Assembly (NCBI GenBank): GCA_025201805.1
Contig: MU619267.1
Location: 102,020-166,019, forward strand
Source: Parasitella parasitica NRRL 2501
Taxonomy: Eukaryota > Fungi > Mucoromycota
Direction of reading: 5' to 3'
DNA length: 64,000 bases
The notes under the pieces were generated by a model. It saw only the letters and a list, made by a program, of their open reading frames with translations. It did not search any database and was not told the origin of the DNA. The stretch's first letter is position 1, and each line of letters begins with the position of its first letter. Positions 4,904 to 60,832 of this stretch are shown piece by piece. The translations under genes and the position numbers were made by a program.

Positions 4904-6666
4904 CAACGAATACCAGTAAAAAAAAAACCCCCCTCCCCCATTTTTTTTCTTTAATTATTATATCAAATGTTCGAATCAAATTTATGCCTCTTTCAAAATA
5001 TTATTTATAAAATTCATCCCTCCTTTTTTTCCCCAGAAATAAACCAGTTGTATATTCGTGTTGTGTGCGAGCGAGCATTTGATTTTGCATGCTGCTATCT
5101 TGTCCAAGAAGTGGGCGTTTTGTTTGTTTGTTTGGATTAGATGCGCCACATCTTTTTAAGAATATATTGGATGTGCTTGTGTTATCATACCACTCGGGCC
5201 CTTCCCCCCCCCCCACTGCTCATTTTCATTATAAAACCCATCAATGATTGATGTTTTTTCGGTTTTGAAGGCATATTTTATGGTGTTCTAGTGGGCAGCA
5301 AGTGCGCAAAACTACACCAAACAATTTCTCAGAACTTGTACTCGATATCTGATGCATTTTCACTTAAAAAATAGACAATGAAAAAATGATCGATTTTCAA
5401 CAATTTTTGATGAGGGTTTACAAGGGAAAATTTGCGGAATAGCTATTATCCGATTTTTTGTTCTGAACAACCTGTTTTTACCAAACCAAGTACTAGTAAA
5501 AAATGACCAGAAATACTCCAATTTTTATATAAAGCCGTCTGTTGGAGGTGTTACTTAAGCAAGTTACAGTCTTTTAGTCGAAAAACGTATTCTCCTTCAA
5601 CTGCAGATTACTCGAAATTTTACGATAGCTTTTTACTTCAAAAGTATACCATTAGATGCGAAATTCAATATTCTACAAAATTGATTAAGGCTATAATATG
5701 AACTATTTTTAAACTCAATTGATGGCGACTGCCATTCAAATACAGACTTTTAAAATTGTAATTTTTAAAAATTATCCAAAGATTCTGACCTTCTTCAACA
5801 TGAAGAGATAAGAGTAAGCTTTGACGATATGATATCAATTTATTCTAGTATGCATGTCTAGTCACATTTCTATACTGAAGCTTGCAAGTAAAGATCTCGA
5901 TATCATGTAAACAAAGTTAAAGGGAAAAATTGAGAAGATTGTAGGTATACATTTTTAACGGTAAATGTCTTCTAAAGATGTTATAACTACTGATGTCTTA
6001 TTACATAGACCTTTAATACTAATTCAGTCTTATTCAACGGAATATTTAGTTTTTATAAGTTCGCGACTCTTGATATTAGCCGGTGCCATTTGTTGTAGAG
6101 TACAACCATGCTTATTCCTTATTGGGTCTACATCATTGGCAACTGTGTCATTGGATGTGAAGATGGAACTTATAAGTGCTGTTGGAAAGGTTACGTTATC
6201 GTTAGATATAGTTTCTCAACACCATCTTCGGGTTTGACCGTCAAGAGTGGATTAAGTAACCTAATTTTCACTTTTGAGGGGTAGTTGTGCTCTTAAATCG
6301 CTTAAATATCTTCTTTCGAAACTGGGACTGTATAGCTTTATCTGGGTTTCCAATCAAGGGCAGAGTCAGAAGTGGTAAATTGACAGATGCAAAAACACTT
6401 TCTTCAAGAGGAACTGAAGACAGCGAGGATGTTCCTATTGAACACATACAAAATTTCATCCAGCACTTGATCAATATATTCTCTAGATATTTGAATAAAT
6501 AACCTTTGTAACCGCCTTAATATTTGGTCAAATTATTTTCTCAAAAGCGAGCAATTTATTTTCAAACTGCTGGGCAAATTTAGATTCTCACACAAATGTC
6601 CAAATTTTTTCAAAAAACTGGGCGGAGTTTTCAAACATCCGGTAAATTGAGAGTGGAAACACAGTA

Positions 6667-6790
6667 CAGCTAACGCAGTGCCAAAGGGCGGTTTTTTAAA
6701 TCAAAAGGGCGGGCCATTTTACGTATATTTGTATTATAAAGTAGCCGCCCTTTAGTTTTAAAAAACCGCCCTTTGGCGTTGCGTTGACTG
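6667..6790. mobile_element. 124-bp MITE with ~46-bp imperfect TIRs and TA flanks
   Basis: Left end TA-CAGCTAACGCAGTGCCAAAGGGCGGTTTTTTAAATCAAAAGGGCGG. The reverse complement of the right end is TA-CAGTCAACGCAACGCCAAAGGGCGGTTTTTTAAAACTAAAGGGCGG. Confidence 0.8.
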
Positions 6791-7434
6791 TATTGATGAA
6801 AAGTGCCAAACAAATCCAAATTTTTTTGTTTTCGGAAAATAATCAAAGAAAACCCTGGCTTCGTATCTTACCTCTGATTGGCCAAAAAATCTGATATTTT
6901 GGACGCGCAGCTTCCGCGATAAAGATGATGGAATGCTCAAGCATGGCATTGTTTCAACGATATTAGAGTTCCCCAATATCGGTAGGATTGCCAATAAAGA
7001 TAATCATCGTACTCTAGAAACAAAAACAAAAAAAACAAAAAAAGATGCTTTCAGGCCTTTTTTTTCTTTTGATTTCTTGATCCTGCAAAGCAAAATTTAC
7101 TGTCGTAAAAATTGCATGTTTTCATTTGTAAGTTTATACGCTGTCGAATATGCGTACATACATCATGTTAGGTAAACACTCCTCCAATTTTGACATACAG
7201 ATGCAATAATGCTGATGTGTAGCCTGAGCTTTTTGGTGTCTTGATCTAGAGATGCTTCACTAGCACTCGTTATCCTAGAAACATTAAAGCGTACCGATCT
7301 CCATGCAGATATCGCTTGGTTTAGATTTCAAACACAAAACCCTTATATGACAAACCTGCCTTATCAGCATCTTTGGCGCATTTATCTTAATGGAGTGATC
7401 CATTTGACTGTAAACTTACACTAAATATGTGCTG

Positions 7435-21197: not shown

Positions 21198-22801
21198 TTA
21201 ATACAGTTTGATTCAATAAATAATAACAATTCTTTGTGTCGGGTAGTAGTGTTCCTTCATACAATCCTTAAATTGATCAAGTACACACTTCGCTGTATCA
21301 GGGCCAAAAAGAAAAAATAACGGCATAAATACTGGAAGAAGTTATTGAGCTACGAGTTGCGGCCACAAAGCTAATTGACTTTCACAGGTCAATTTTGACA
21401 TCTACATCACAAAAAAGCTGCTTAGCTGACTTTATTCAAGAACGATAGTGAAACAATGCTGCCACAACCCGAAACTTTTAATAAAGAAGATATGTATTTT
21501 ACTCATCAATGAGTTTTGCGATTCTGCCAAGTCCTACTTAACAAGGGCATAGCAGTAGACAATTGATATGACAAAAAAAGGGAAAATAATAAAGACTTTT
21601 AATTCACCCAGATAACAGAAGTTGTTATCTTTTCATATATTGACTATAGTTACGAGAATTAATCATTTACAATAATACAACAACTTAGTCATGTTTAACA
21701 CTTATTTAGCTATCATTATGCAGCATCAGCGTTTCAATAGCGGTCAGATTTTCCACAAACATCTGTTAATCATCTCTGCTATAAAAAGAACCGTACCACT
21801 GCGATTCAACTTGGAAACATCTTTTTATTGAAATCTAGAAAGTTCTCACCAGAAGCCACAGATTTTCGTGTATAATCGCTGGTAGGCTTCGATGAAAAGC
21901 AAAATCAGAGCTTCTCTTATGCGCCATCAAATCAGGCATGATTATCACTACACGAACATAACTTGCTTTTCACTAGGCGATGTCTTTATCAAAAGTTATC
22001 TGCAAAAACAGGTTTTATTGAGATCTGCAAGATCGAAATAAGAAAAGTATTGGATAAAACGTTGAATTAACGAGATACGAAAACTTGAGATTACTTTATT
22101 AAAGATTCAACTTTGCATCTGCTATTTATACTTTTTACAACTACATAAATTTTTGGTGACTTTTTTAAAATACTAGTTGATACTAATCGATAAGAATAAT
22201 TTGCAAGCAACATCATATCCTTAACAGGGTACGATGCATTATTGTACTACAAGGTTATTGATCTTTGATCTGACAGTACCTTATTGTTTGTCAATCATAC
22301 AGATCTCTGTTACAGATAACCTTCCTGATTTGAAACAAAGACTTTATTCTCCTGTTTCGACAAGTATAACAACACATCATTGGAAAATCTTAATTGAAGT
22401 ACACTATCATGATCTCCTATCCTACATTATGGCAGATTAGGTTTATTTTTAATAATTTATCTTGAATATCACATATTTGCTCATAACTTCTTGATCAGCC
22501 ATAAATTAAGATAAGAGATCATGATAATGTACTTCAATTGAAAATTGGGAGATTAACCAATGATATGTTGTTACACTTGTCGAAACAGAAGAATAAAGTC
22601 TCTGTTTCAGATCAAGAAGGTTTTGTCTGTAACACAGATCTGTGTGATTGACAAACATTAAGGCACTGTCAGGTCAAAGATGAATAACCTTGTAGTATAA
22701 TAGTATATCGTAGCCTGTTGGGGATGATGTTACTTACAAATTACTCTTATTGATTAGTTTCTAAAATAGGTCACCAAAAATTTACACCTTTTGCCAAAAC
22801 G

Positions 22802-22899
22802 ATGTTGCAAGAAAAGAAATTAAAGTGTCGCACTTTTACAAAAATCAGTGTCGTATGTTTCTAGAAAAGAGTGTCGCACAATTCAGAGAAATAGTGTCG
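22802..22899 (+). repeat. Five RTGTCG-type motifs at exact 23-bp period inside the left TIR (mirrored in the right TIR)
   Basis: ATGTTG at 22802, then GTGTCG at 22825, 22848, 22871 and 22894. CGACAC/CGACAT copies occur at about 26373-26470. Confidence 0.85.
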
Positions 22900-23615
22900 T
22901 GCTTTTCAAAAAAAGGACATGTCAGATATATTGTTCTTTTCACCGTAGTCATTATCATGGTCATTATCATGGTCTTTACCGTTGTCATTACCGTGGTCAC
23001 GCCTAGGTTTTTTTGTTAACCTGAGTGATTTCAAATAAAGAAAACAGCATTCAAGCTTTAGAAAAGTTCCAAGCATTAAGCGATCAATTTGAGGTGTGCT
23101 ATTTATCTGATCCGGCAATTCCCGTACTTGCAACTAAATTACAGATTTCAAAGTATCCGTTAGCCTTTTACACCTACAAGTCCTGTGAACTATAGCCAGT
23201 GGCACCTATAAGGATATACAAGCACCTTAATACGAAGGGCTTAAGTCGAGCTACTTATTGCTCTTAATTCTTCTTTTTGAAACATAAATACTCTATATAA
23301 AATAAAAATTTAATATGTGGTCTGACTAGTTGACTATCGAAAAAGGTTATCTTTATTCACTGATGGTTATAAAAACATCGAGCTTTGTCAAAGAAAAACT
23401 GCAGGGTATGCTGTCGTAAAAAAATAAGAGTGCATTAATTTACGGGGTTATTCGCGCTATGGGAAGATTTAAGTTACGAGCACCAACATAGGTTACCTAA
23501 AGGTAATTTTCAAGTTAAATAAAACGAACACCATTCTTGGCTAGTGGAAACAAATATCTTCTGCTAATAATAGTAATATGAAGAAAAGAAAGATGATACT
23601 GGAATTGGTATAGTT

Positions 23616-26075
23616 TTATAGGGATCTTTGGATCGGCCGTGTTCTGCAATCAAACTTCTTCATAGCCTTTGGGTCTTGAAGTAACAGCTCTGCTGCATAA
23701 ATTTCAACTTCGTTTGTGATAGGGAGTCTGTCAACTACTATTTTTGTGATGTTTTTTTGCTCGCTGAAATAATAGATCAATCAGGTGTCAATATATGTAG
23801 TATTTACTTGCTTTTTACCCGAGAAATTCCTTCAAATCTTCAACGTTTGTCGTTAAACCTGCGTAATCCAATACGACCAATATAACTTCTTTTTTGGTGA
23901 TGTTTAAAAACTCAATAAAATCTAAAAGGCACAATATATTAATTCAAGAATATCTTCAGCATGTACTGCCTATTACCTGTCGTGGTGCCATCTGTTTCCT
24001 CTATGGTGTCCGCATTGATGTCTCGTTTGTGAAATGGCTGATCGGCATCGGAAGTTTTCGAGACAAAGATTTTATCAACTATTGACCGACTTTGTAGGTT
24101 ATCAACCATTCTTTTTATGAGTCTTATTCTGTTTTCTTCATTTTTGTCACAGGATGACTTTCTGACATATCCCACTATTTCTACACCTAATTTTTTCTGT
24201 GTCTTCAAGAATCCTTGATATTTCTCATTATATTCTAATATATTTTTAATCACATTTGCTACAAACAAAAAGTCAATAAGGAAGTCAATACGAAACATCT
24301 TCACTTTACCGTGGTATTTGTTTTTTAAAACATAAACTAGCTGACCTGCTCGCTTCGCTCACGACGGCCATCGTCGTCCTACCGGGAGCTCAATCTTTTG
24401 ATAACTGCTAATCAGATATTCAATGCTCTTTTATTGTTGTTTATCTATAACTTAAAATATATTGTTAGACAGAAATAAAAATATAGATGTAGTAACGCAC
24501 AATAGGAAAAAAACGTAAAANNNNNNNNNNNNNNNNNNNNNNNNNNNNNNNNNNNNNNNNNNNNNNNNNNNNNNNNNNNNNNNNNNNNNNNNNNNNNNNN
24601 NNNNNNNNNNNNNNNNNNNNNNNNNNNNNNNNNNNNNNNNNNNNNNNNNNNNNNNNNNNNNNNNNNNNNNNNNNNNNNNNNNNNNNNNNNNNNNNNNNNN
24701 NNNNNNNNNNNNNNNNNNNNNNNNNNNNNNNNNNNNNNNNNNNNNNNNNNNNNNNNNNNNNNNNNNNNNNNNNNNNNNNNNNNNNNNNNNNCGACAGATG
24801 CTGTTCCTTCCACCAAGATCATGGCGTTTGGTGAAAGAGGGTGTACTTCTTCTAGCCATTTTATGAGTATTGTTGTGTAGTAATTTGGCACCCAATCTAC
24901 TGGTAGATCGCAAATGACTTTCTTGTCCACAGCTTGAACAAATACGTCTACTGGTTGTTGCATCATTAACGCTGATTGTTGTTTGCTGATCTACTTTCAT
25001 AGTTTCAGATTGAGATCCCAGTTGATACAAAGAGTTCGATTATGATTGTAAAGTGAAAACAAATTGAGTCATACGATTAGCAATGTTGTTAGCGCAATGA
25101 CGATAAGAAGATCGATGATGGCCTACAACACCACAGCTCCCGCAAGTGTTAGTATTAGCACGGGTGTTATTGAGGCAAAGCCTGCTTGCAGAACGCGAAT
25201 GGCCTCCTTGACCACAGCTTGAGCAGATTCTAATAGCAGGCACTCTGTGTTTGTAGTAATAAAAAGTGTCAACATATTTGTATTAAATAAAACAGAGTGT
25301 GCAGCTTAAAAAGTAGCCATTGCTGGTTAGACCATGTCCAATTTCGAAAGATTCAAGCTTTTTCGCCCGAATTTCGACATTATTCACTTTGTTTAGAGAG
25401 TTTTTTAATTTTAAATTAATGTACATGATCATCTATTTCATGTTTTGTTTCATACGTTATAATTTTCTGACGTTTTAAAGTATTTTTAATTAGTTTCTGG
25501 AATTGAAGATGTGCTTGGCTCAACGCCGACTTCTCGAAATTTAACAAACTGGAATGGAACTGAAAAAACCAACTAAAGCATTTGTTAACTCCATTTCTTC
25601 TTGGTTTAGGTTTGTAGCTTCAAGCGACTTTAATGCGACTGTTTTTTTTTATGAAGCATGTAAAATAATTATACAGATATTCCAATGTTGGGTATAGGAA
25701 CCAGTTTCGTTTTTCGATCTTTTTCGTGAATCTTCACCTTCCATAAAGTTTAATTTGTTTTTACCGCAGAACGAGCTGAAGCTATTGAGTGTTTTTTTGT
25801 TGAAATATGTTGAACATTGTACCATTTTGGCAAATAAGTCTGAGAGTGATACTATTTTTAAGTATACATCATCAAGAACAGGTTCGGTACTTCATTAATA
25901 AATTTTAAAACTTGGGCTTTTGTTTCTGTATTGCAAATTAGTAAAGCTATCACCATTAAAACATCAAAATCATTCCCAGTTTGGTTACAGATTCATCTGA
26001 AAAGTCTTCGTTTGGCCTTTCATAAATATATTCTTTAAACACAAAAGGGTTGCCATATAATCTTGTTTTCGACAC
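23616..26075 (-). pseudogene. Intron-containing serine-recombinase (resolvase)-like gene, frameshifted and interrupted by a Helitron
   Basis: The spliced 3' exons read ...EIVGYVRKSSCDKNEENRIRLIKRMVDNLQSRSIVDKIFVS...DGTT / DFIEFLNITKKEVILVVLDYAGLTTNVEDLKEFLG / EQKNITKIVVD...KKFDCRTRPIQRSL*. The 5' portion at 25429-26075 is frameshifted coding sequence. Confidence 0.7.
24337..25428 (-). mobile_element. Non-autonomous (internally deleted) Helitron
   Basis: The minus strand begins A|TCATGT at 25428. It ends with the hairpin ACGACG-ATGGC-CGTCGT, then GAGCGAAGCGAGCAGGTCAG-CTAG|T. It encodes CxxCGxxxHxRS knuckles and RHDLGGRNSIC, which resemble RepHel N-termini. It contains an N gap. Confidence 0.8.
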
Positions 26076-27046
26076 TAGTACAGGAATTGCCGGATCAGTT
26101 ATATAGCACACCTCAAATTGATCGCTAAATGCTTGGAACTTTTCTAAAGCTTGAATGCTGTTTTCTTCATTGAACTTTAGTTGAAAAAAAAATGCAGTGC
26201 TTGATTGCGACTTATAAAAACCACGGCGAGAAGAGTGTGCAAATTTAAAAAAAAATAGTTTTTATTTGAAATCACTCAGGTTAACAAAAAAAACCTAGGG
26301 GTGGCCACGGTAATGACCATGATAATGACTACGGTGAAAAGAACAATATATCTGACATGTCCTTGAAAAGCACGACACTATTTCTCTGAATTGTGCGACA
26401 CTCTTTTCTAAAAACTTACGACACTGATTTTTGTAAAAGTGCGACACTTTAATTTCTTTTCTTGCGACATCGTTTTGGCAAAAGGTGTATAGTTGGAAAA
26501 ATATTCAAAGTTGAATCTCTAATAAAATAATCTCAAGTTTTCGTATCTCATTAATTTAACGTTTTATTTTACACTTTTCTTATTTTCGACCTTGCAGATC
26601 TCAAAACTTCTGCCAAAAGTAAATGTTTAACGAGATTGGACTTGAAAAGCATACGTTTGACTTGGGATTATCTGATGAAATCTTTTGTGTCGAGAAAAAG
26701 TAATGCATACATGCAAAGTTATGAGTTGAAAATACAAATTTTCGTTTTAATATTGCATATTAGTAATATAAATAATAAATAATAGGTTTTGGTAAAGAAC
26801 AAATACATACAGGTTCGACACAAATACTTTGCATTCAGTCATTTTATATCAAATACATAGAAGGATGATAATTTCGGTTGGTGAGAAACAGGAAATTTGG
26901 AATTTCCTCAAGACATGCCTCAAGATATTGGCAATGTACTAGCAAATTTATTACCATATGTGTATATTGTGAAATACGCGATGTTAACCATCTCTTTGAT
27001 AAGCTATACAATGTCAGCATAAATACAATTGATAACAGCGTAGTAA

Positions 27047-60252: not shown

Positions 60253-60832
60253 AAAAACTGCGTTTTTATTGATTAGGCTGGTTTTGATGTCAATCTGAAA
60301 CCAAGTAAAGCCTGGACTTCTAGGGGACAAATGGCAGTGACCATCACTCGAAAAGAGCACCTCCTCATATTATTCTTGATGCTACATCTTCTGTAGGAGT
60401 GATTAACTCAAGTATTCGTGTACCAAAGCAATCTCCAAAAGCAAGGAAGATACAGGGGGGGGTGCAAAAGAAAAAAAAAACCTGGTAGCCTCTAATGAAG
60501 ATGGTCCAAAAGGCTCAACAGCTGGTCATTTCGTGCGATTCTTGCGAGAAACCATGAATACTTTAGACAAGTACGACCAAATGAGAGAGTATTATATAAT
60601 TATGGATAATGCACCAATTCATAAACAAATAGAAGATATTCTCAATGAGAGAAATAAAGACTATAAGTGTGTGTATCTTGCCCATAATTCTCCAGAGCTC
60701 AATCCCATCGAGCAATTTTGGACTTTAGTTAACCGCAAGGTTAGACATCAAAAGCTCAAAGATACCGAAATCTTGAAAGAAAGAACTATTGGGGCCGCAT
60801 ATGAAGTTTCTATTCAATATCTTAAATCGTAA
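60253..60832 (+). pseudogene. Tc1/mariner-IS630 (DDE_3) transposase relic
   Basis: NCVFID*AGF (first catalytic D followed by a stop), YIIMDNAPIHK and YLAHNSPELNPIEQFW, with frameshifts between the blocks. Confidence 0.9.

Follow-up and report, generated by a model that had tools for sequence, protein, structure and literature searches.

A probable non-autonomous Tc1/mariner element with a serine-recombinase-fold cargo gene in Parasitella parasitica

Fanzor1-only elements with Mariner terminal inverted repeats (TIRs) and TA duplications have been described, and Fanzor1 elements of other superfamilies are present in Mucorales (Bao and Jurka 2013, PMC3627910). Tc1 transposons of the Tc1-MP1 group are known from Parasitella parasitica, Mucor and Rhizopus (PMC9977792). 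Among serine recombinases, IS607 has no TIRs, makes no duplication, uses a GG crossover and carries a MerR-type N-terminal domain (PMC6188088), and the residues Y6, R8, S10, D36, R68 and R71 are crucial in Tn3 resolvase (Olorunniji and Stark, PMC2794168). Here we analyzed a 64,000-nt stretch of Parasitella parasitica NRRL 2501 (the window), in which a 3.7-kb element at 22785-26487 is filled by a single minus-strand gene with GT-AG introns that encodes a serine-recombinase-like (SR-like) protein. Serine recombinases are, to our knowledge, otherwise essentially prokaryotic or viral. A full-text literature search returned nothing relevant on serine recombinases or resolvases in transposons of Mucorales or Mucoromycota. 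An earlier sequence-only reading had offered two explanations, a new fungal family moved by a diverged serine recombinase with TA as its crossover, or a non-autonomous Tc1/mariner element with a resolvase-fold gene as cargo. Our results favor the second. We regard the element as probably a dead, non-autonomous Tc1/mariner (DDE_3) element with a recombinase-fold cargo gene.

The window element has TIRs flanked by TA, as Tc1/mariner elements do. A repeat search paired 22778-22909 with 26363-26494 (132 nt, 96%), 22913-22972 with 26305-26364 (97%), 23008-23039 with 26261-26292 (100%) and 23034-23128 with 26077-26171 (95%). The TIRs of about 350 bp with TA on either side that had been read from the letters are thus real, with arms of 344 and 411 nt and TA at both junctions. 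Arm-to-arm alignment indicated that the right TIR exceeds the left by about 68 nt, which are 5′ coding sequence. In the outer left TIR, tandem repeat analysis with TRF gave a period of 23 with 4 copies at 22824-22913, and the inner array of the left arm is partly mirrored in the right arm at about 26305-26345. Across the 32.8-Mb Parasitella genome, TA stands next to CACCTTTTGCC at both window ends and at all but one of about 15 independent family ends, the sole exception having CA in its place; the DNA outside the TA is unrelated between these ends.

The genome was scanned for the transposase domain DDE_3 (PF13358). There were at least 171 matches and none fell inside the window element, in agreement with the earlier view that it has no DDE gene of its own. 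Three matches, however, lie inside elements that bear the window TIR, at C43:110132-110446 and at 2305-2520 of both C225 and C182 (C-numbers are contigs of this genome). The outer 113-115 nt of the window TIR matched these elements at 90-91% (E 1e-37 to 1e-38); when the ends were aligned, identity was about 90% over 113-125 nt, all the AGTGTCGC repeats phased at 23 bp were common, and the shared terminus read TA followed by CACCTTTTGCCAAAA... The C43 element (L027 747-2372, 1.6 kb) has TA or CA followed by CACCTTTTGCCAAAATGATGTCGCAAG at its two termini and encodes HTH_28/HTH_32 together with a truncated DDE_3. In the C225/C182 element the DDE_3 protein is 289 aa long (E 1.4e-26) and shows the motifs DESGF, MDNAPIH and PYSPELNPIE; its open reading frame (ORF) stops 9 nt short of the right TIR, and only the right terminus is present, the left one being truncated. 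The DDE_3 E-values in the same-ended elements were 1.4e-26 and 4.4e-14, in addition to HTH_28/HTH_32. No second, internal TIR pair was found in the DDE_3 elements with window termini. A DDE transposase behind the same TIRs had been named beforehand as the finding that would make the SR-like gene mere cargo, and C43 and C225/C182 supply it. Since the same TIRs occur on DDE_3-encoding elements, the SR-like gene is probably cargo, and the proposal of a new family moved by a serine recombinase at TA fails the test that had been set for it. The phased repeats, all of which the DDE_3-encoding elements share, are therefore most simply read as putative binding sites of the DDE transposase and not of the recombinase.

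A rival explanation is an autonomous transposon with a diverged serine recombinase of its own, which would recognize the TIRs, cut the element out as a circle and insert it at TA through a 2-bp crossover. The TA at both junctions and the lack of a DDE gene within the element would suit it, but its termini and phased repeats belong to DDE_3-encoding Tc1/mariner elements, and the known serine transposons (IS607) have no TIRs (PMC6188088). Moreover, a second Parasitella element combines the same termini with an SR-like gene only about 35% identical and with unlike inner repeats, which does not fit co-evolution of a protein with its ends. What the protein itself contributes to this question is considered next.

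The SR-like protein belongs to a large family. A profile of the main exon, searched against 1.84 billion representatives, retrieved 667 clusters at 50% identity (E up to 0.001), 390 of them at 1e-10 or better. Intact members are about 353-362 aa long, and those looked up were all 'hypothetical' or 'uncharacterized' Mucorales proteins, from Hesseltinella, Halteromyces, Mucor, Phycomyces, Cunninghamella, Blakeslea, Apophysomyces, Zychaea, Rhizopus and Sporodiniella. Feature neighbors of the family in the ESM Atlas came from Mucoromycota only. The number of clusters and genera, the intact proteins of about 355 aa and the motifs and intron positions conserved across Mucorales genera argue for long-term selection on the family.

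Sequence comparison gave little indication of the fold. No Pfam domain was found in the window exons or in 10 full-length members, PF00239 had no match in these or in the whole genome at E up to 10, and two family profiles retrieved no serine recombinase in a hidden Markov model (HMM) search of the PDB. Alignment with Pin-type invertases by hhalign gave P = 0.006 in the expected register, with a shallow Pin profile (sequences 84-98% identical). We analyzed the window protein exon by exon and took the fold from a full-length family member, P0061, which was modeled by AlphaFold2 from an 80-sequence alignment (pLDDT 88.7, pTM 0.77). When the model was compared with the PDB by VIA-align, residues 206-349 matched γδ resolvase (2rsl_A) with Z 10.0 and a root-mean-square deviation of 2.5 over 102 of 115 residues. 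Further matches of the catalytic domain were TP901-1 integrase (Z 10.0), Sin (9.5), a large serine integrase (9.4), Tn3 resolvase (9.3) and the IS607-like proteins 3lhk (9.2) and IS1535 TnpA (7.3). The top 13 PDB representatives were all serine recombinases, with Z from 10.0 to 7.0, and the best unrelated match to the catalytic domain had Z 5.6. Foldseek gave probabilities of 0.97-0.99 and weak E-values, the latter because the whole protein was the query. In the ESM Atlas, which rests on an independent model, the structure neighbors were PF00239 clusters (TM 0.53-0.63). Two independent structure predictions thus support the resolvase fold that had been proposed from motifs. Directly after the 13 serine recombinases ranked two matches of residues 86-177 to the winged-helix DNA-binding domain of RFX (Z 6.2, over 73 of 76 residues, and Z 6.0), an assignment with moderate support. 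The family protein is thus predicted to begin with a small N-terminal domain, to continue with an RFX-like winged helix and to end in a domain of the serine-recombinase catalytic fold, a mixed β sheet flanked by helices.

The active site is conserved in part. Among 80 family sequences, the Y-x-R-K-S motif has Y211 in 80/80, R213 in 79/80, K214 in 98% and S215 in 74/80, and structural alignment (206 = residue 1) places Y211, R213 and S215 on Y6, R8 and S10 of resolvase. In the hhalign register, IFAS falls over IFED and LDHAGIT over LDRLGRS. The D67 equivalent is retained in 44/58 and that of G70 in 52/57, while the D36 position is S (74/79), the R68 position is Y/F/H and the R71 position is L/I; the window copy reads VLDYAGLTTN at this second motif. 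The missing arginines that had been noticed in the window copy are therefore a property of the whole family. With the D36, R68 and R71 equivalents lost, it is doubtful that the protein performs canonical strand exchange. Further basic residues that are conserved (K214, R238, R259, R354 and R360) could conceivably act as substitutes, judging from the alignment. At its C-terminus the model has short helices at 338-343 and 345-351 and ends at 362, and the structural alignments cover only the first 10-15 residues of the E helix, the long helix behind the catalytic core by which serine recombinases form dimers and tetramers and rotate their subunits.

For the autonomous transposon, these results count on both sides. 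The serine-recombinase fold with its conserved Y-x-R-K-S and the position of a DNA-binding domain N-terminal of the catalytic domain, as in IS607 TnpA (PMC6188088), would favor it. On the other hand, of the six residues found crucial for Tn3 resolvase, three (D36, R68 and R71; PMC2794168) are replaced family-wide, and a short C-terminal helix is predicted where a long E helix is expected. Together with the termini shared with DDE_3 elements, this makes autonomous movement by the SR-like protein quite improbable.

The window termini occur with other cargo as well. A 2.07-kb element on C209, the one mentioned above, has them in common with the window over the terminal 55 nt only and carries an SR-like gene about 35% identical to the window gene. 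A 5.2-kb element on C106 (L026, 85500-93700; 1016-6195) has them in TIRs of 1.2 kb and carries a C2H2 zinc finger and internally duplicated sequence, with neither a transposase nor an SR-like gene; a third, solo end lies about 1 kb beyond it. Family members are also found behind other ends. A paralogue on C15 lies between Tc1-like ends (TA followed by CAGTCGTTCC) of a family that also has members of the size of miniature inverted-repeat transposable elements (MITEs), and a Hesseltinella paralogue lies between Tc1-like ends (TA followed by CAGTTATTTC) with an uncertain outer boundary. Two identical Hesseltinella copies were rejected as independent insertions; they share 5 kb including flank and are a segmental duplicate. 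The subfamily of the window gene is single-copy in the genome, the next-best paralogue being 37-46% identical.

At every TIR-bearing family locus, inverted arrays of 10-22-nt tandem units lie inside the TIRs, and these arrays are lineage-specific. They bring in a further rival explanation, a two-layer element in which the SR-like gene and its arrays would form a cassette that inverts, excises or integrates by itself, settles repeatedly in Tc1/mariner elements and spreads by their ends. The differences between the arrays of different lineages, the two very different cassettes behind the same Tc1 termini, the conserved active-site motif and the predicted winged helix, which would be available for reading the arrays, all fit such a cassette. 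However, no junctions of cassette movement separate from the Tc1 ends were seen, some members have neither arrays nor TIRs (L063), and the arginines are missing. Tandem arrays in long TIRs are also found in foldback-type elements, which have them without any recombinase. We consider the two-layer element rather improbable. Because the short inverted arrays are present at every TIR-bearing locus, we leave a small probability to a protein that acts on them as a chemically diverged but still active recombinase, the cassettes then being a second mobile or invertible layer that colonizes Tc1/mariner elements. A co-variation of array motif with protein lineage was unsupported: C209 and the Hesseltinella locus L064 both have TGAACCG..GTTCA, and P0085 is not among the closest relatives of C209.

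Several of these loci have features of their own. In Hesseltinella vesiculosa, a 1.4-kb array of palindromic GTGAACCGGTTCAGC lies beside one family member (L064 4824-6204), and 2.2-kb inverted arrays of 10-nt units lie on both sides of another (L065 344-2519 / 4933-7295), where the public annotation calls the arrays 'genes'. On C29:15000-24999 (L052) an SR-like gene is centered in perfectly identical inverted arms of more than 2.9 kb, each with a 471-aa DDE_3 frame. Inverted pairs of DDE_3 genes 4-8 kb apart are also found on C46, C128, C25, C66, C38 and C30; they may represent composite or long-TIR Tc1 elements, or else an artifact of assembly. On C71 (L036, 2128-2957) a small Tc1/mariner element with perfect 31-nt TIRs, TA followed by CAGGATTTCGC and a truncated DDE_3 ORF sits 10 nt past the stop codon of an SR-like paralogue; with TIRs of its own it is a separate element, which rules out a fusion of DDE_3 with the SR-like gene. 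On the minus strand of C37 (205000-214999, L051; 6313-9762) an open frame of about 900 aa, which has a viral superfamily-1 RNA helicase domain (PF01443, E 4e-21), immediately precedes an SR-like exon of the same orientation, with only a gap of 390 N between them, and C3 (L043) has a near-duplicate. The 1149-aa ORF that spans both was rejected as evidence of fusion, as its frame reads through the N gap; candidate readings of the arrangement are a fusion, a neighbor or an accident of assembly. A DDE_3 (Tc1/mariner) transposase fragment is present elsewhere in the window (60515-60775, E 8.7e-14).

The window element did move. It lies in one arm of an older palindrome, as had been noted before, and the insertion point is crossed without a break by the other arm of the palindrome and by seven uninterrupted paralogues; in addition, one contig of run X7, an RNA-like public run (listed as guessed RNA), stops exactly at 22784. 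The filled site in the window reads TTTA, the element and TATAGTTG. The seven uninterrupted paralogues read TTTATGTAGTTG, and the window without the element reads TTTATATAGTTG. This fits either an insertion with no net duplication and one G-to-A change, or a TA duplication followed by a 2-bp loss. The palindrome copy in the window matches its paralogues at just 82-86% identity, with a deletion of 14 nt immediately downstream of the site. All four runs compared have the insertion, and no empty allele or circle junction was found in them, although contigs cannot reveal rare forms. The insertion is old and shared, not polymorphic, among these runs. Three other strain assemblies, X4-X6, also carry it and differ by small indels within the degraded 5′ exons and the right TIR, at 25867, 25887, 26246 and 26362 (+AT, +TAGAGTA, +A, and +TTTTT in X4 and X5 only). 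The older palindrome belongs to a foldback or MITE-like repeat of very high copy number, with 185 first-look candidates in the genome and a summed contig depth of 10,000-76,000 vs 30-40 for single-copy DNA. Just to its right, a transcribed neighbor gene starts, since an 86-nt GT..AG intron on the + strand (26699-26786) is removed in a 1084-nt contig of run X7.

The 3′ half of the window gene is intact, and its transcripts are still made and correctly spliced. In run X7, one contig (record 27; 819 nt, 0 mismatches) joins 23404-23763, 23819-23921, 23977-24258 and 24310 onward, and by phase arithmetic the exon lengths and ORF frames agree with one open frame from IVGYVRKS to the stop. The motifs IVGYVRKS, DKIFVS and VILVVLDYAGLTTN that had first drawn attention to the gene are all present in the ORF pieces, and the three-exon structure of the C-terminal domain was found again in about 20 paralogues, many of them with stops. 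Using tblastn, residues 3-65, 102-175, 161-266, 279-314 and 309-361 of full-length homologues were mapped to 26219-26028, 25891-25661, 24322-24002, 23928-23818 and 23780-23622 of the window, respectively. The earlier outline of the gene stands as to its minus strand, its GT-AG introns and its stop at 23616, but not as to its start near 26075, as homology reaches 26219 inside the right TIR. Likewise, what had been described as a long unknown N-terminal region is the normal N-terminal half of the family, split by a nested repeat of about 1.33 kb. The 5′ half is in decay. ORF 26177-26275 reads ...VVFISRNQALHFFF where the family start is MVF..QAIC, has no ATG and is out of frame with the next stretch, ...EENSIQALEKF...VCYITDPAIPVL. 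This copy is dead, as had been supposed: the start codon is gone, frameshifts disrupt the 5′ exons and the nested repeat interrupts the gene.

The nested repeat has at least 50 genome copies of 77-97% identity and the marks of a Helitron, namely a 3′ hairpin followed by CTRR, insertion before T and no TIRs. On the minus strand its 3′ end, formed by a hairpin and CTAG, reads ...CGACGATGGCCGTCG...CAGCTAG and then T in 5/5 copies; other copies have a 5′ TC end, the window copy being 5′-truncated. No Rep/helicase gene was found in the repeat, which is therefore non-autonomous. It contains an N gap (24521-24791) and an ORF with CCHC zinc knuckles (25040-25243; weak zinc-knuckle matches), and ORFs of the repeat family have three CX2CX4H-type knuckles, at 25040-25243 and about 24900-24960. 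The knuckles and the gap region were ruled out as parts of the gene, as the mapping of full-length homologues assigns both to the repeat. The letters on either side of the gap are collinear parts of the repeat, which would be continuous across it; in L060, a copy without a gap, 312 nt correspond to the 271 N of the window. The gap has no bearing on the gene frame, because the gene is already split by the insertion. The run X7 contig continues for 52 nt past 24310 into the nested repeat, and the window transcript is thus a chimera of the repeat and recombinase-like exons.

Table 1. Features of the window element and its insertion site, and tandem arrays at related loci.
Feature	Position	Strand	Size or sequence	Basis
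Older high-copy palindromic repeat hosting the insertion	22018..22784, resumes 26488-26604	unstranded		inverted repeats, uninterrupted paralogues, contig depth
TA, left end	22783..22784	unstranded	TA	read in sequence
Left TIR	22785..23128	+	344 nt	repeat pairs, end-to-end arm alignment
Outer, Tc1/mariner-type left TIR	22785..22915	+	terminus CACCTTTTGCCAAAACG	four or five AGTGTCGC-type repeats, 23-bp spacing
Inner 12-nt tandem array	22948..22999	+	GTCATTACCATG, 4.3 copies	TRF, arm alignment
3′ untranslated region	23404..23615	-		within run X7 contig, 0 mismatches
Last coding exon, stop 23616-23618	23616..23763	-	ends ...FDCRTRPIQRSL	ORF 23616-23780, splice joint 23763/23819, P0061 309-361
Intron, GT..AG	23764..23818	-	55 nt	run X7 joint; CT..AC on + strand
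Exon with D67/R68/R71 region of serine recombinases	23819..23921	-	VILVVLDYAGLTTN	ORF, RNA contig, hhalign register
Intron, GT..AG	23922..23976	-	55 nt	run X7 joint
Exon with Y-x-R-x-S, DKIFVS and KRD	23977..24258	-	IVGYVRKS (24155-24178)	ORF, RNA contig, ~20 genome paralogues
Intron, GT..AG	24259..24309	-	51 nt	run X7 joint 24258/24310
Short transcribed gene stretch between nested insertion and intron	24310..24335	-		RNA contig; tblastn reach 24322-24346
Nested Helitron-like non-autonomous repeat	24336..25668 (right limit approximate)	-		copy number, gap collinearity, boundaries in five copies
Degraded winged-helix exon(s), ~P0061 85-175, frameshift near 25895	25661..25956	-		tblastn, translations
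Degraded first coding region, ~P0061 1-65, in right TIR; no ATG, frameshift near 26180	26028..26245	-		tblastn, translation
Right TIR; outer Tc1/mariner-type part 26363-26487	26077..26487	-	411 nt	repeat pairs, TRF, arm alignment
TA, right end	26488..26489	unstranded	TA	read in sequence
Array unit, C56 locus			CTTGTCCATTAC	arrays flanking gene
Array unit, C29 locus			TTTACGTGGTCA	arrays flanking gene
Array unit, C209 locus			22-nt unit with TGAACCGCGTTCA	arrays flanking gene
Array unit, P0061 locus			AACTCGGGCTTC	arrays flanking gene
Array, P0142 locus			2.2-kb arrays of 10-nt unit	flanking gene

We propose that a DDE transposase encoded by sister elements would act in trans on the window element, with the termini and their phased repeats as the sites that it binds and cuts, as the shared ends suggest. 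This would explain why the element has TIRs and TA flanks and came to lie in the older repeat. The place of the transposase gene would have been taken by a cargo gene of a Mucorales-specific family of about 355 aa, whose protein keeps Y-x-R-x-S and the D67 equivalent and has lost the equivalents of D36, R68 and R71. This protein would most likely be a sequence-specific DNA-binding protein, possibly a diverged recombinase, with the short inverted arrays that flank the gene as its presumed site of action. The window copy has decayed through loss of its start codon, frameshifts and a Helitron-like insertion that split the gene.

Several observations weigh against a non-autonomous Tc1/mariner element of this kind. 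Mobilization in trans is inferred from shared ends. No fully intact DDE partner with window ends was seen in the genome, the C43 copy having a stop and a truncation and the C225 copy lacking the left terminus. The one testable empty site shows no clean TA duplication, the window without the element being as long as the uninterrupted paralogues. Two divergent SR-like genes behind the same termini require repeated and unexplained capture. The near-invariant Y-x-R-K-S implies that the pocket has a function, for which a mere passenger would have no use, and the lineage-specific inverted arrays hint at an activity of the SR-like protein itself. A last rival takes the opposite direction and sees in the gene a functionless passenger, a host or horizontally acquired gene fragment caught by transposon ends and decaying without a role. 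That the window copy and many paralogues are pseudogenes, and that the window subfamily is single-copy with so distant a next-best paralogue, would agree with it, but 667 clusters of a family with intact proteins, kept motifs and kept intron positions do not, and we find it very improbable.

If the element is a non-autonomous Tc1/mariner element, this DDE-less TIR element needs no new transposition chemistry, because its ends are ordinary Tc1/mariner ends. The element itself is ordinary, and the novelty lies in the cargo: a large, unannotated and undescribed Mucorales family with a predicted recombinase fold behind a winged helix, spliceosomal introns and carriage in transposons. It parallels the capture of TnpB/Fanzor by eukaryotic transposons and raises the question of why a recombinase-fold protein is a recurrent passenger. 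Should any member be active, it would be a serine recombinase evolved for eukaryotic nuclei and of interest for genome engineering; a recombinase layer acting on the arrays, if true, would be without precedent in eukaryotic chromosomes. In transposon libraries and gene annotation of Mucorales, these genes should be marked as transposon cargo.

Among described systems, the closest arrangement is, by analogy, the capture of a prokaryotic insertion sequence (IS)-type protein by Mariner-type elements seen in the Fanzor1-only elements. Both have Mariner-type TIRs in common with relatives that encode a transposase, both are flanked by TA and carry one gene, of prokaryotic-IS type, that is not a transposase, and both occur in Mucorales. 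The cargo differs, being a serine-recombinase-fold protein here and a TnpB/Fanzor nuclease there, and the window TIRs are long (~345-410 nt) with inner tandem arrays and a copy of the 5′ end of the gene. At the level of the superfamily, the DDE_3 partners on C43 and C225/C182 resemble the Mucorales Tc1 transposons (PMC9977792) in TA target, TIRs and a helix-turn-helix plus DDE_3, whereas the window element has no transposase. The cargo protein in turn resembles the small serine recombinases (PF00239; γδ, Tn3, Sin, Hin/Gin/Pin) in its predicted catalytic fold (Z 9.3-10.0), in Y-x-R-x-S at the end of the first strand and in keeping the D67 and G70 equivalents. It differs from them in having no sequence match to Pfam or PDB HMMs, in the changes D36 to S, R68 to Y/F/H and R71 to L/I, in a C-terminal catalytic domain with, in the model, a short terminal helix for the long E helix, and in being eukaryotic with spliceosomal introns. 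With IS607 TnpA it shares the order of a DNA-binding domain first and a serine-recombinase catalytic domain last, in line with its matches to 3lhk and IS1535 TnpA, and IS607 ends likewise have multiple subterminal repeats (PMC6188088). IS607, however, targets GG and has a MerR-type domain and the catalytic arginines, while the window element has Tc1/mariner TIRs with TA and a predicted RFX-like domain; the window element has none of the characters that define IS607, the domain order of the protein being all that is shared. The cargo protein works, at most, like an IS607-type TnpA, in an element whose nearest counterparts are the Fanzor1-only elements.

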